From the NCBI GenBank assembly GCA_002269645.1, contig NIVC01001264.1, positions 1 through 64,000 of the forward strand: a stretch of 64,000 nt of DNA, in the 5' to 3' direction. Source of the DNA: Macrostomum lignano (lineage: Eukaryota). The position numbers were made by a program, and so were the translations under genes. Under the pieces are notes generated by a model. The model was not told the DNA's origin and did no database searches. It saw nothing but the letters and a program-made list of their open reading frames with translations. Shown here piece by piece: positions 43,195 through 49,695 of the stretch; positions within the stretch are counted from its first letter, which is position 1, and every line of letters starts with the position of its first letter.

Positions 43195-46100
43195 ATGCTA
43201 CTAACAAAGCTTTTAGTTGTACTACTTCTCTGCATAGTAGGACGTAAGTGACCTAAATTATTTTCTCTCAACCACTGAGCTTCATACTTCAGAAAGCTTT
43301 TATCTGCTTAAACTGTATTTTATCTATAAATTCAAGTATTCAGCATTTCGAAACTTTGTATTTAGGGCTTATAAAGGGAAGAATATTTTAATAAAAAATG
43401 TTAATTTTCAAGAGAGATCATGCAGTGTTTCTCATACTTCCTTTGGCAAAACGTGATGGCACAATTTGCAAAAACGCAACATGGAATACATACAATTTTT
43501 TAAAAAGTTATTAAACTTTTTTTAAAATTTTTCCTGTTAAAATATTGCGACTGAAAGGATCAATGTACCATCTAAGTTTTTGGCCAAGATATAACAATAT
43601 AAAAAATTATAAATATCAACATTTTAGCATGGAATCTAACGGAAGCTCGCTCTTCTCGAAGTCGGAGTTCCTCTCGCTACTCGCGCTATTCTTATGGCTC
43701 TTATGCCTCTCGAACAAGCTCGTAAGTATACTTGTGTACTTTTAACTAAGATTGATATTCTATGCATCTGTAATATATTTTACATATATTGTTTTGCATA
43801 CATTTTAAGAAATTACTTTCTATAATTTTTTTTCTACAACAGACAATAAATACTTGCAATAAAGAATGAGAACATTTAATTTGAAATTTTACGTAAATCA
43901 CAAAACCCGCGAACTTTCCAGCTCCTACACTCGCTACACCTATCGCTACAGCCGGAGTTACACTTCCTACAGGGCCTCTAGTGTTCGTTACAGGCCATCA
44001 AGATATTCCTCCTCTTATTCTTACTACACGGGAATGTACTATTCGTACTATTACTATACCTACTATAGTTACTACTATGGTAGCACTTGCACCCGTACAA
44101 CCTCCGGCTCGTACTCGGTGGATTCGTGCAACTCGGCCAAGACTACAACTACGACTACTACAGCAGCTCCTGCTCCCGTCAGTGAGTGATCAACTCAATC
44201 AATAGATGCATCTAAAACTGATATGAGATAGCCTACTGAAGAGTAGCAATAAAATGTTTTAATGGAAAATCTTATAGTTGTGGCATGAAACGATTTCGCT
44301 CGTATTGTTACATTGGAATTTTGAAAGCATATGCGCATCACTTGTGACCTGCTTGATAAACAGTTGTCTGACAAAAGAAATGACGTAGACGGCTAGAGTA
44401 ACGATAGAAGGGCCAGACTATAGAAACTAGCGCATGACTGCGGGCCAGAGAGAGGAGAAGAAAGAAGAGAGGGGAGATGAGAGAGGAGAGAGGAGGGGAG
44501 AGAGGAGGGGTGAGAGGAGAGAGGGGAGATGAGAGAGTAGAGAGGAGAGAGGAGGGGAGAGATGAGAGAGGAGGGGAGAGAGGAGGGAGAGAGAGGAGAG
44601 AGGAGAGAGGAGAGAGGAGAGAGGAGAGAGGAGGGGAGAGATGAGAGAGGAGGGGAGAGATGAGAGAGGAGGGGAGAGAGGAGAGAGAGGAGAGAGGAGG
44701 GGAGAGGAGAGAGAGAGGAGGGAGAGAGGAGAGAGAGAGAGGAGGAGAGAGGAGAGAGGAGAGAGATGAGAGAGGAGGGGAGAGAGGAGAGAGGAGAGAG
44801 GAGAGAGGAGGGGAGAGATGAGAGAGGAGGGGAGAGATGAGAGAGGAGGGGAGAGAGGAGGGGAGAGAGGAGAGAGGAGAGAGGAGAGAGGAGAGGGAGA
44901 GAGGAGAGAGGAGAGAGAGAGAGAGAGAGGGAGAGAGGAGGAGGAGGAGGGGAGAGGAGAGAGGGAGAGAGAGAGAGAGGAGAGAGGGGAGAGAGAGAGA
45001 GGAGAGAGGAGGGGAGAGAGGAGAGAGGAGAGAGGAGGGGAGAGAGAGAGGAGGGGAGAGAGAGAGAGAGGGAGAGAGGAGAGAGGGGAGAGAGAGAGAG
45101 GAGGAGAGAGGAGGGGAGAGAGGAGAGAGGAGAGAGAGAGGGGAGAGAGGAGAGAGGGGAGAGAGGAGAGAGGAGAGAGGAGGGGAGAGAGAGAGAGGAG
45201 GGGAGAGGGAGAGAGGAGGAGGGGAGAGAGGAGAGAGAGAGAGGAGGGGAGAGAGGAGAGAGGAGAGAGGAGAGAGGAGAGAGGAGGGGAGAGAGGAGAG
45301 AGGAGAGGAGGGGAGAGAGAGAGAGGAGGGGAGAGAGGAGAGAGGAGAGAGGGAGAGGAGAGAGAGGAGAGAGGAGAGAGAGGAGGGAGATGAGAGAAGA
45401 GAGGAGGAGAGAAGAAGAGAAGACAGAAGAAGAGAGAACAAGAGGAACAGAGTAAGAAAGCACCCGATGGTCGGGGAGAGAGAGGCTTCGCGGGCCTGAT
45501 CTAGCTGATAAAAAGCTGGCCTCAATCCAGTGCAAATCAGAACTTAGTTGTCTAGTAGGTGAATCCTCTGCTGAGGCCAGGTGCGTTTTCAAAGGATGCA
45601 TATTATTTTTACCGAAATATTTACTTTTCAGCTTGCTCCTCCACCAGCGGATCAACCTTGACGTCGAACACCGGCCACTTCAACAGTCATTCGGGCTACG
45701 GCTCAGTCGCCTACACAAACAGCATGTCCTGCCGGTGGACCATCCTGGCCGACGCTGGCAAAACCGTGAAGCTGAGTTTTGTTTCCTTTGCCACAGAGAA
45801 GAACTACGACCAAGTCAAAGTGTACGACGGCAGCGACTCTACAGGCACCCTGTTGGGCACCTTTCACGGCACATCCAGCTCCGACTATAGCTATCCCGGC
45901 TCCACCGTGGTGTACAGCACCGGTCGCTATATGTACGTCACGTTCACTAGCGACTCCTCGGTCACTAAGAATGGATTCAGCGCGCTTTACCAACATGTGT
46001 CATGTGAGTAACCTGTTTGTGTGTCTGTCTGTCTGTCTGTCTGTCTGTCTGTCTGTCTGTCTGTTTGTCTGTCTGTCTGTCTGTGTGTCTGTGTGTCTGT

Positions 46101-49100: not shown

Positions 49101-49695
49101 CTGATCTAGATGGGATCATTCTGATCTAGATGGGAGTGGGAGAATTCTGATCTAGATGGGAGCAATTCTGATCTAGATGGGAGCATTCTGATCTAGATCT
49201 GAGCATTCTGATCTAGATGGGATCATAATGATGGGGATAATTTCCATTTTAATGGAGCTGTCCATACGATTATAATCTGAAATAGCCAATCCACCTTCCA
49301 AACCTTCGCTCGCTCACGCAGGGAGGCGGTCGCTAAACAAGGCCAAAGCCGTCACCGCCTGGAAGCGGCTGGGCAGCAGCGGCGGCGGCTCTACCACCGC
49401 GCTAATCGCTGACAACGACGCAGTGTCGTCGGGCGCTCGCGCCTCCGGCAGCGGCGGCAGGTCCGGCAGTCGCTACGCCAACATTGCCGCCTTGTCCGCC
49501 GCCAACTCAGACAGTTTCACGCCGCCGCCGGTGCCGCCGCCGTCGACGCTTTACTACGGCGCTAACGGCACTGGCGGCGCCAATGGCATCGGCTACGGCA
49601 TGCAGGGCCATCAGTTTGCGCCAGTCAATCCTACGGCGGCGCCGCCGGCTTATGACACGGCTTATCCGCCGCAGGCTCAATCGTTTAGGATGTGA
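43195..49695 (+). CDS. Type I membrane protein: SP, Tyr/Arg/Ser-rich, CUB, CUB, Shisa-like Cys domain, TM, PPxY tail (~639 aa, 9 exons)
   Basis: Exons 43195-43243, 43628-43721, 43922-44181, 45632-46003, 46285-46362, 46497-46913, 47744-47888, 48616-48746, 49322-49695. All are GT-AG with matching phases, total 1920 nt, no internal stop. CUB motifs CRWTI..VKLSF.SF.TE..YD.VKVYDG and [18 protein letters not shown]; C-C-CC-CC domain; [21 protein letters not shown] followed by CCCRTC; PPAY in the tail. The CUB exons are most certain and the first three exons least. Confidence 0.8.
44445..45440. repeat. ~1-kb polypurine (GA/GAG) tract in intron 3 of the CUB gene
   Basis: Almost only G and A on the + strand. 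Confidence 0.95.
46020..46240. repeat. (GTCT)n microsatellite in intron 4 of the CUB gene
   Basis: Tetranucleotide run. Confidence 0.97.
47998..48425. repeat. ~77-bp tandem repeat with alternating A/B variants
   Basis: AGAGCGCGTGTTCAAGGTCA starts at 48002, 48079, 48157, 48234, 48310 and ~48398. Confidence 0.9.
48855..49215. repeat. 20-21-bp minisatellite in the last intron of the CUB gene
   Basis: GATCT(T)AGATGTAATCGTTCT grading into GATCTAGATGGGAGCATTCT. Confidence 0.9.

Follow-up and report, generated by a model that had tools for sequence, protein, structure and literature searches.

Shisa-like adaptors are seen as minimal proteins whose tiny ectodomain leaves the choice of target open, and this raises the question of what to make of a gene that, in the flatworm Macrostomum lignano, combines the hallmarks of such an adaptor with a pair of CUB domains. 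The gene lies at positions 43195-49695 of the forward strand of a 64,000-nucleotide stretch (positions 1 to 64,000 of contig NIVC01001264.1, assembly GCA_002269645.1), and it is this whole stretch that we call the window. We regard it as very probably a real CUB-CUB-Shisa-like gene, and its product is predicted to be a type I single-pass membrane protein of the Shisa-like (STMC6) adaptor superfamily. The paper that defined the STMC6 family is reportedly that of Pei and Grishin in 2012. Taken as a whole, the explanation that we favor with moderate confidence is that the gene encodes a Shisa-like PPxY adaptor with an inserted CUB pair, which would choose the partner that is placed under Nedd4-type control. 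A natural, CUB-bearing version of this adaptor type is a possible handle on binding partners, and both RNA interference and transgenesis work in M. lignano.

Re-splicing of the raw sequence gave 10 exons totaling 1968 nucleotides (nt), which encode 655 residues with no internal stop, and all exon borders are AG acceptors and GT donors. An earlier note on this DNA had described nine exons and 639 residues. Its stop-free splicing stands, while its counts do not, the 48-nt exon 7 having been left out; both versions are in frame. All of the features that it listed (a signal peptide, a Tyr/Arg/Ser-rich region, Thr-rich linkers, two CUB domains, a six-Cys domain, a transmembrane segment, the juxtamembrane motif CCCRTC and a PPAY motif) were located in the spliced protein. 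Exon 1 (43195-43243) holds the start codon and the signal peptide and ends in a GT donor; the hydrophobic N-terminus forms a hydropathy peak at residues 1-21. Exon 2 (43628-43721) completes the signal peptide, which would end between Ala and Arg (TEA-R), and begins the Arg/Ser/Tyr-rich ectodomain; this Ala-Arg start and an Arg/Gly/Ser/Tyr-rich stretch after it recur in the small relatives described below. Exon 3 (43922-44181) contributes a Tyr-rich run, two Cys and the first Thr-rich linker and ends in phase 1. The Tyr-rich run of the relatives likewise precedes their Cys domain. Residues 24-101 include 26 Tyr, 25 Ser and 13 Arg among 78 positions, and the linkers between the ectodomain modules are Thr-rich.

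The next four exons are those that set this protein apart. Exon 4 (45632-46003, 372 nt) encodes CUB1 (residues ~136-258, with the Pfam CUB match at residues 141-254), so that a single domain occupies a single phase 1-1 exon. Exon 5 (46285-46362, 78 nt, phase 1-1) is a mucin-type linker rich in Thr, Pro and Ala, and exon 6 (46497-46913, 417 nt, phase 1-1) encodes a divergent CUB2 with four Cys, which accounts for the second Pfam CUB stretch. Exon 7 (47585-47632, 48 nt, 16 residues, phase 1-1) is an optional Ser-rich cassette for which the window also offers an in-frame acceptor 6 nt upstream (47579). Exon 8 (47744-47888) carries the Shisa_N Cys-rich domain (VCRNY...); its six Cys follow the pattern C-x16-C-x11-CC-x7-CC at residues 444-483, directly before the transmembrane helix. 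This helix and the juxtamembrane Cys cluster CCCRTC are encoded by exon 9 (48616-48746): the segment at ~490-513 lies inside one strong hydropathy peak (~487-520), the single transmembrane peak in the protein, and CCCRTC follows it. The cytoplasmic tail is encoded by exon 10 (49322-49695), which ends at the stop codon; the tail is of low complexity, abounds in Ala, Gly, Ser and Pro, and contains PPAY at residues 639-642 (49642-49653).

A protein search revealed that two near-identical predicted M. lignano proteins are already public, each with precomputed Pfam matches to PF00431 and PF13908. The first, NCBI "hypothetical protein BOX15_Mlig009113g1" (652 residues, here P0001), is 97% identical to the window protein, includes exon 7 by way of the equivalent upstream acceptor, and reads uninterrupted through exon 3 as our model does. 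The second, UniProt A0A1I8J5J8 or "CUB domain-containing protein" (604 residues, here P0002), has 96% identity over the whole alignment and is the same as the window protein except that exon 7 is skipped and that a frame-shifting internal splice occurs in exon 3. We judge the latter to be an annotation artefact because that splice destroys the Tyr-rich run. The N-terminus of our model is identical in both public proteins. Thus the gene is not hidden, as the earlier note had it, but is already in databases, unnamed and unstudied, and was missed only by a prokaryote-style open reading frame (ORF) track. The same holds for the claim that a CUB-CUB-Shisa fusion is undescribed, which fails for the databases and stands for the literature: our literature searches turned up no account of a CUB-Shisa protein or of the Mlig009113 product.

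A second genomic copy, L001 (contig NIVC01000010.1 of GCA_002269645.1), encodes P0001; its sequence runs colinear with that of the window, within the gene as well as in the two flanks. All ten exons and their GT/AG borders are kept in this copy, and the coding sequences differ at 42 of 1968 nt (2.1%) with no indel. In contrast, the introns carry ~5% mismatches and many indels, the six that are short enough for global alignment having 1.4-7.2% mismatches (five of them 3.7-7.2%). That exon borders and frame are kept despite such diverged introns places the gene structure beyond chance. The codon changes comprise 21 synonymous and 16 non-synonymous ones, from which we make a rough estimate of ~0.25 for the ratio of non-synonymous to synonymous divergence (dN/dS). 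All 7 nt differences in the CUB2 exon are silent, and Shisa exon 8 has zero nt differences, so both exons are unchanged at the protein level. Since frame and splice sites are kept, coding indels are absent, coding divergence is below intron divergence and synonymous changes outnumber non-synonymous ones, both copies are under purifying selection as one reading frame. This is the evidence that bears on the reading that the locus is a functionless decaying duplicate or an annotation artefact. The genome is recently duplicated and repeat-rich, the second copy stops five codons earlier than the window copy (its PPAY being kept), and its intron 6 contains a long terminal repeat (LTR) retroelement ORF of 1346 residues (L001 12883-16923, minus strand) that is without counterpart in the window copy. 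However, decay is contradicted by this pattern of substitution and by the open frame and splice sites that both copies retain in full, and we consider it exceedingly improbable.

A further concern is that two genes may have been wrongly merged, namely a secreted CUB-CUB gene and a separate small Shisa-like gene. The ORF track is fragmentary, the public models disagree on exons 3 and 7 and are therefore not fully settled, and omission of exons 4-7 (joining exon 3 to exon 8) yields an in-frame protein of 350 residues that is complete and has the usual family layout. Nevertheless, the CUB exons are not adjacent to a small Shisa-like gene but nested between the signal peptide and Arg/Ser/Tyr-rich exons and the Cys and transmembrane exons of one scaffold, and this nesting makes a merger very unlikely. 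In addition, neither a start codon nor a signal peptide belongs to the CUB exons themselves, the phases match throughout, both public models join the same exons, and the borders are kept in the second copy. One gene that joins CUB and Cys/transmembrane exons, as had been proposed, is accordingly the model that we retain.

What kind of adaptor the C-terminal half represents was addressed by sequence, profile and fold. Pfam Shisa_N (PF13908) scores 25.0 bits with the full protein and 27.2 bits with its C-terminal part, against a curated cut-off of 22 bits. As a single sequence, the Cys domain matches the mouse Shisa3 structure 5m0w with E=0.002, and a profile of 40 relatives that covers the Cys and transmembrane module matches 5m0w with E=1.4e-6 and no other solved structure significantly. 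An AlphaFold2 model of the 110-residue Shisa module (starting at protein residue 440 and built from a shallow alignment) has a mean predicted local distance difference test score (pLDDT) of 73, with a helix at model residues 50-109, that is, from ~489 in the protein. The top Foldseek match of this model is again 5m0w (probability 0.99, target-normalised TM-score 0.52, 38% identity), with an E value of 0.15 that reflects the shortness of the domain. Sequence, profile and fold thus agree on Shisa3, so the Shisa-like assignment made in the earlier note stands. Neither CYYR1 (PF10873) nor WBP-1 (PF11669) is among the Pfam matches of the window protein even at E<=10. A family member would be a small protein with the Cys domain as its only folded ectodomain module; the window protein departs from this, and we file it as a variant of the Shisa-like superfamily because two CUB domains have been added.

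The CUB domains themselves are readily recognized, with Pfam CUB (PF00431) matching in two stretches (E=3e-27, 95.6 bits) in the same reading frame as Shisa_N, which confirms that two CUB domains are fused to a Shisa-like module. A local CUB hidden Markov model (HMM) matches the CUB1 exon with E=8e-37 and the CUB2 exon with E=9e-26. CUB domains typically bind protein partners, often by means of a Glu/Asp/Asp triad that holds Ca2+. Among solved structures, CUB1 matches cubilin, PCPE-1, neuropilins, enteropeptidase and MASPs, and it also matches Neto2 (7f56) with E=7e-5. The last of these matches brings up the possibility that the protein is an auxiliary subunit of a ligand-gated ion channel, similar to Neto and SOL-2 or to CKAMP proteins. 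The order of two CUB domains, a small Cys module and a transmembrane helix does parallel the CUB-CUB-LDLa-transmembrane layout of Neto. Furthermore, vertebrate Shisa6-9 are AMPA-receptor auxiliary subunits, and CUB-transmembrane and Shisa-transmembrane proteins both modulate glutamate receptors (PMC7653359). Yet Pfam finds no LDLa domain between CUB2 and the transmembrane segment, and the Neto2 match is weaker than those to cubilin, PCPE-1 and neuropilin. A conserved C-terminal PDZ-binding motif, as expected of Shisa6-9/CKAMP proteins, is also lacking from the two copies, of which the one in the window ends in ...SFRM and the other in ...PPQA, and the relatives end in PPxY. Finally, invertebrate Shisas have been placed with Shisa4/5, and the auxiliary role has been argued to be a vertebrate innovation (PMC7653359). 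We therefore find a channel subunit distinctly improbable.

How unusual the combination is was assessed with an exhaustive phmmer search of 1.84 billion representative proteins, in which the 110-residue Cys and transmembrane module served as query at E<=1e-3. This search recovered 92 relatives, among which Pfam identified Shisa_N in 55, CYYR1 in 8, and WBP-1 and Comm in 2 each. A CUB domain occurs in just one of the 92, the M. lignano protein, a count to be read with the fact that many of the relatives are single-exon fragments from short contigs in which architecture is invisible. Consequently, the combination of CUB and Shisa_N is unique among the detectable relatives of the module, although more distant Shisa-like families may also include CUB fusions, and the expectation that relatives are normally small and free of CUB domains is borne out. 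Word-index searches with the module and with the 40-sequence family profile gave almost no matches, and as the module query missed even the identical M. lignano protein they are silent on absence. For three relatives on long contigs (L003-L005), the local CUB HMM found no CUB exon near the Shisa exon (<=10 kilobases (kb) upstream, 2-10 kb downstream), a weak negative because the HMM contains the window CUB domains and introns elsewhere may split the domain; the same HMM picks up each of the two CUB exons of the window and of the second copy. A 1351-residue Mactra protein (P0058) was considered as a second multi-domain relative and rejected, its Pfam matches being only to transmembrane-like low-complexity sequence. 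M. lignano also encodes a 150-residue Shisa-like protein, UniProt A0A1I8I898, that is labelled "CX domain-containing" and has neither CUB domains nor an Arg/Ser/Tyr-rich region. Thus M. lignano keeps plain family members beside the CUB-bearing one.

The best full-length relatives have 250-390 residues and are either uncharacterised or mis-named after their low-complexity tails; some, for example, are called "cuticle collagen" or "proline-rich protein". They come from molluscs, annelids, brachiopods, bryozoans, nemerteans and a priapulid (Lingula, Bugula, Tubulanus, Lineus, Haliotis, Lottia, Gigantopelta, Liolophura, Pinctada, Magallana, Ridgeia, Paralvinella and Priapulus), and the ten best-scoring ones are 33-45% identical to the window protein over the Cys and transmembrane module, with E values down to 1e-22. 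Their common scaffold consists of a signal peptide ending between Ala and Arg, an ectodomain in which Arg, Gly, Ser and Tyr abound, the Cys domain with the motif C.N...NG(T/S)..G.F.CP..FEP....CCG....YCC, the transmembrane helix, a Cys cluster (consensus CCCxCR, present after the helix in most aligned relatives) and a Pro-rich tail with PPxY, which often lies only a few residues from the end of the protein. The mature N-terminus of the small relatives (P0009-P0099) reads RGGRGG... or RSSRS... and continues as a Tyr-rich stretch. Of 46 full-length-like relatives, 34 have a [PL]PxY motif after the Cys domain, and in 21 of the 46 it lies within the last 20 residues. As far as we have found, these proteins form a conserved protostome subfamily that seems never to have been studied, and the analysis brings out its traits, an extreme Arg/Gly/Ser/Tyr-rich ectodomain and a PPxY near the C-terminus, which this flatworm shares.

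These same traits bear on a reading in which the protein is a cell-surface or matrix adhesion glycoprotein whose Tyr-rich region, mucin-like linkers and CUB domains are the active parts, the PPAY being incidental. The ectodomain composition is indeed extreme, with Arg, Ser, Tyr and Gly making up 79% of residues 24-118 against a median of 59% in the ectodomains of 36 relatives, and Thr/Ser linkers are typical of O-glycosylated stalks. On the other hand, the near-C-terminal PPxY recurs across phyla, which argues that it is functional, and the Cys and transmembrane module is the most conserved part of the protein, its Shisa exon being free of nucleotide change between the two copies. Adhesion as the main role is in our opinion improbable.

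Where the CUB pair came from can be read from the alignment of the window protein with its relatives, in which one clean extra block of ~330 residues, present in M. lignano only, separates the Tyr-rich run from the Cys domain. This block comprises CUB1 and CUB2, each preceded by a Thr linker, and a closing Ser linker. It corresponds to exons 4-7 (372, 78, 417 and 48 nt), all of which are phase 1-1, with each CUB domain forming one exon. Phase 1-1 exons are the classical mark of modules that were inserted through exon shuffling, and shuffling of CUB modules is common in animals. In the Macrostomum lineage, the CUB block would thus have been inserted by phase-1 exon shuffling into an existing scaffold, between the Arg/Ser/Tyr-rich region and the Cys domain. 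The earlier note had taken the CUB domains as an addition to a Shisa-like protein, and this we uphold with a change of position: because the Arg/Ser/Tyr-rich region is already a compositional hallmark of the small relatives, the pair sits within the scaffold and is not fused to its end. The locus is a textbook-clean case of domain gain by phase-1 exon insertion, and current understanding is not overturned by it.

Since exons 4-7 are all phase 1-1, the block can be skipped in frame, and the annotated skipping of exon 7 makes cassette behavior plausible. A bolder version is that exons 4-7 form a cassette, selectable by splicing, on a PPxY adaptor that is ancient in protostomes, such that the gene would yield both a 350-residue ancestral adaptor and a 655-residue form in which Ca2+-dependent capture of an extracellular ligand or co-receptor by the CUB domains leads to Nedd4-type ubiquitination. 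We consider this version unlikely. Were it true, it would represent a receptor type undescribed for the Shisa-like superfamily and would provide a way into the function of a widespread Arg/Gly/Ser/Tyr-rich family.

The explanation that we prefer, a PPxY adaptor with an inserted CUB pair that selects the partner, draws its mechanism from characterized relatives. STMC6 members are described as transmembrane adaptors (PMC5578492; PMC11399591), and the Shisa family regulates trafficking of Frizzled, FGF and AMPA receptors (PMC7653359; PMC5578492). CYYR1, a member of STMC6, uses its PPxY motifs to bind the WW domains of WWP1, WWP2 and ITCH and directs WWP1 to degradation in lysosomes (PMC11399591). 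By analogy with CYYR1, WBP1 and Shisa5, the cytoplasmic PPAY of the window protein would recruit Nedd4-family HECT ligases through their WW domains; by general CUB biology, an extracellular or luminal partner would be selected by the CUB-bearing ectodomain, and the trafficking or ubiquitin-dependent turnover of that partner would be controlled as a result. WW binding, ubiquitination and the existence of a ligand are properties that we infer from such proteins, and that the product works as a Nedd4-ligase adaptor is a possibility to which we assign somewhat less than an even chance. The suggestion in the earlier note that added CUB domains could make this a ligand-sensing receptor coupled to ubiquitination is, at this strength, a reasonable proposal.

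Several points weigh against this explanation. The window protein has one PPxY only, while in CYYR1 the removal of one such motif changed little and it was motif pairs that counted (PMC11399591). Support for the predicted exon junctions comes from splice signals, from conservation and from the two public models. CUB2 is divergent and by itself gives a weak search result against PDB (cubilin, E=0.01). In pairwise alignments to a cubilin CUB domain, E190, D194 and D242 of CUB1 and E349, D353 and D400 of CUB2 lie opposite E/D/D positions that we take, from knowledge of CUB structures, to be those of the Ca2+ site, and as they are read off pairwise alignments they are candidate Ca2+-site residues. 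A single-sequence AlphaFold2 model of the CUB-CUB-Shisa-transmembrane portion was poor (mean pLDDT 42) and was left unused. Lastly, phmmer with the N-terminal Arg/Ser/Tyr-rich region alone recovered zero relatives, so the likeness of this region to that of the relatives is one of composition and position only; a claim of sequence homology there was dropped as non-significant and reduced accordingly.

The surroundings of the gene can be described briefly. On the same strand, 1.3 kb upstream, is a gene for a UBE2D/UbcH5-type ubiquitin-conjugating enzyme (E2) at 40383-41870 (+), with a Pfam UQ_con match in exon 1 (E=1e-39) and a second coding piece at ~41709-41870; the same neighbor is found at the second copy. 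The UBE2D/UbcH5 class of E2 works with Nedd4-family HECT ligases, and the adjacency of this gene to one for a PPxY adaptor is probably a coincidence. The intron of the E2 gene is nearly filled by a 19-bp minisatellite (40777-41690, unit TCTCTGTGTCTTGTCTCTA, ~48 copies, 94% matches), which is the cause of a strong AT skew there. Within the CUB-Shisa gene, repeats occupy intron 3 ((AGAGAGG)n, ~1 kb, 44447-45437), intron 4 ((CTGT)57, 46013-46238), intron 8 (a 77/155-bp repeat, 47995-48429) and intron 9 (a 20-bp repeat of ~17 copies, 48857-49224), and these four array-bearing introns are not of equal length in the two copies of the gene. Repeated units containing GTCACGTGAC are present at 49800-50250, and downstream of the gene are a 30-bp tandem array (51089-51967, ~29 copies, 92% matches) and a GA-rich 21/41/62-bp array (52496-52736). 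The window is rich in retroelements: long ORFs at 30375-33257 (-) and 58512-61706 (-) are LTR retrotransposon pol with reverse transcriptase, RNase H and integrase, and further reverse transcriptase and RNase H fragments lie at 11842-12603 (-) and 15638-16681 (+). An ORF at 21979-22845 (+), whose C-terminal part matches the type of MLLE domain found in poly(A)-binding proteins (Pfam E=1e-27), probably represents one exon of a gene similar to those for such proteins.

For completeness, we compare the window protein with the known systems that it resembles. With Neto1/2 and C. elegans SOL-2 it shares two membrane-distal CUB domains, a small disulfide-rich module, one transmembrane segment and a disordered tail, but its small module is Shisa_N and not LDLa, it has no PDZ ligand, and its CUB domains are no closer to Neto than to cubilin or PCPE-1. 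The STMC6 adaptors CYYR1, WBP1 and VOPP1, which bind WW-domain ubiquitin (E3) ligases, are alike in their small Cys-rich ectodomain, transmembrane segment and PPxY tail, whereas the window protein has one PPxY rather than several, a large ectodomain, and no Pfam match to the CYYR1 or WBP-1 families. Vertebrate Shisas (Shisa3, as in 5m0w, and the Shisa4/5 branch) have the same Cys-rich fold with its C-C-CC-CC pattern, a single transmembrane segment and a Pro-rich tail, and Shisa5 and its close kin carry PY motifs as the window protein does. In contrast, vertebrate Shisas have neither CUB domains nor an Arg/Ser/Tyr-rich region, and the window protein is grouped with them at the level of the superfamily and not with one particular Shisa. 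Closest of all are the small protostome relatives, for example those of Lingula anatina (XP_013399202.1), Bugula neritina (KAF6034543.1), Tubulanus polymorphus (XP_074660906.1) and Lottia gigantea (XP_009052931.1), with which the whole scaffold is held in common. The M. lignano protein differs from these in that the NG(T/S) glycosylation site of their Cys domain has been lost and reads ARGT, and in that the ~330-residue block is present in it while the relatives are without CUB domains.

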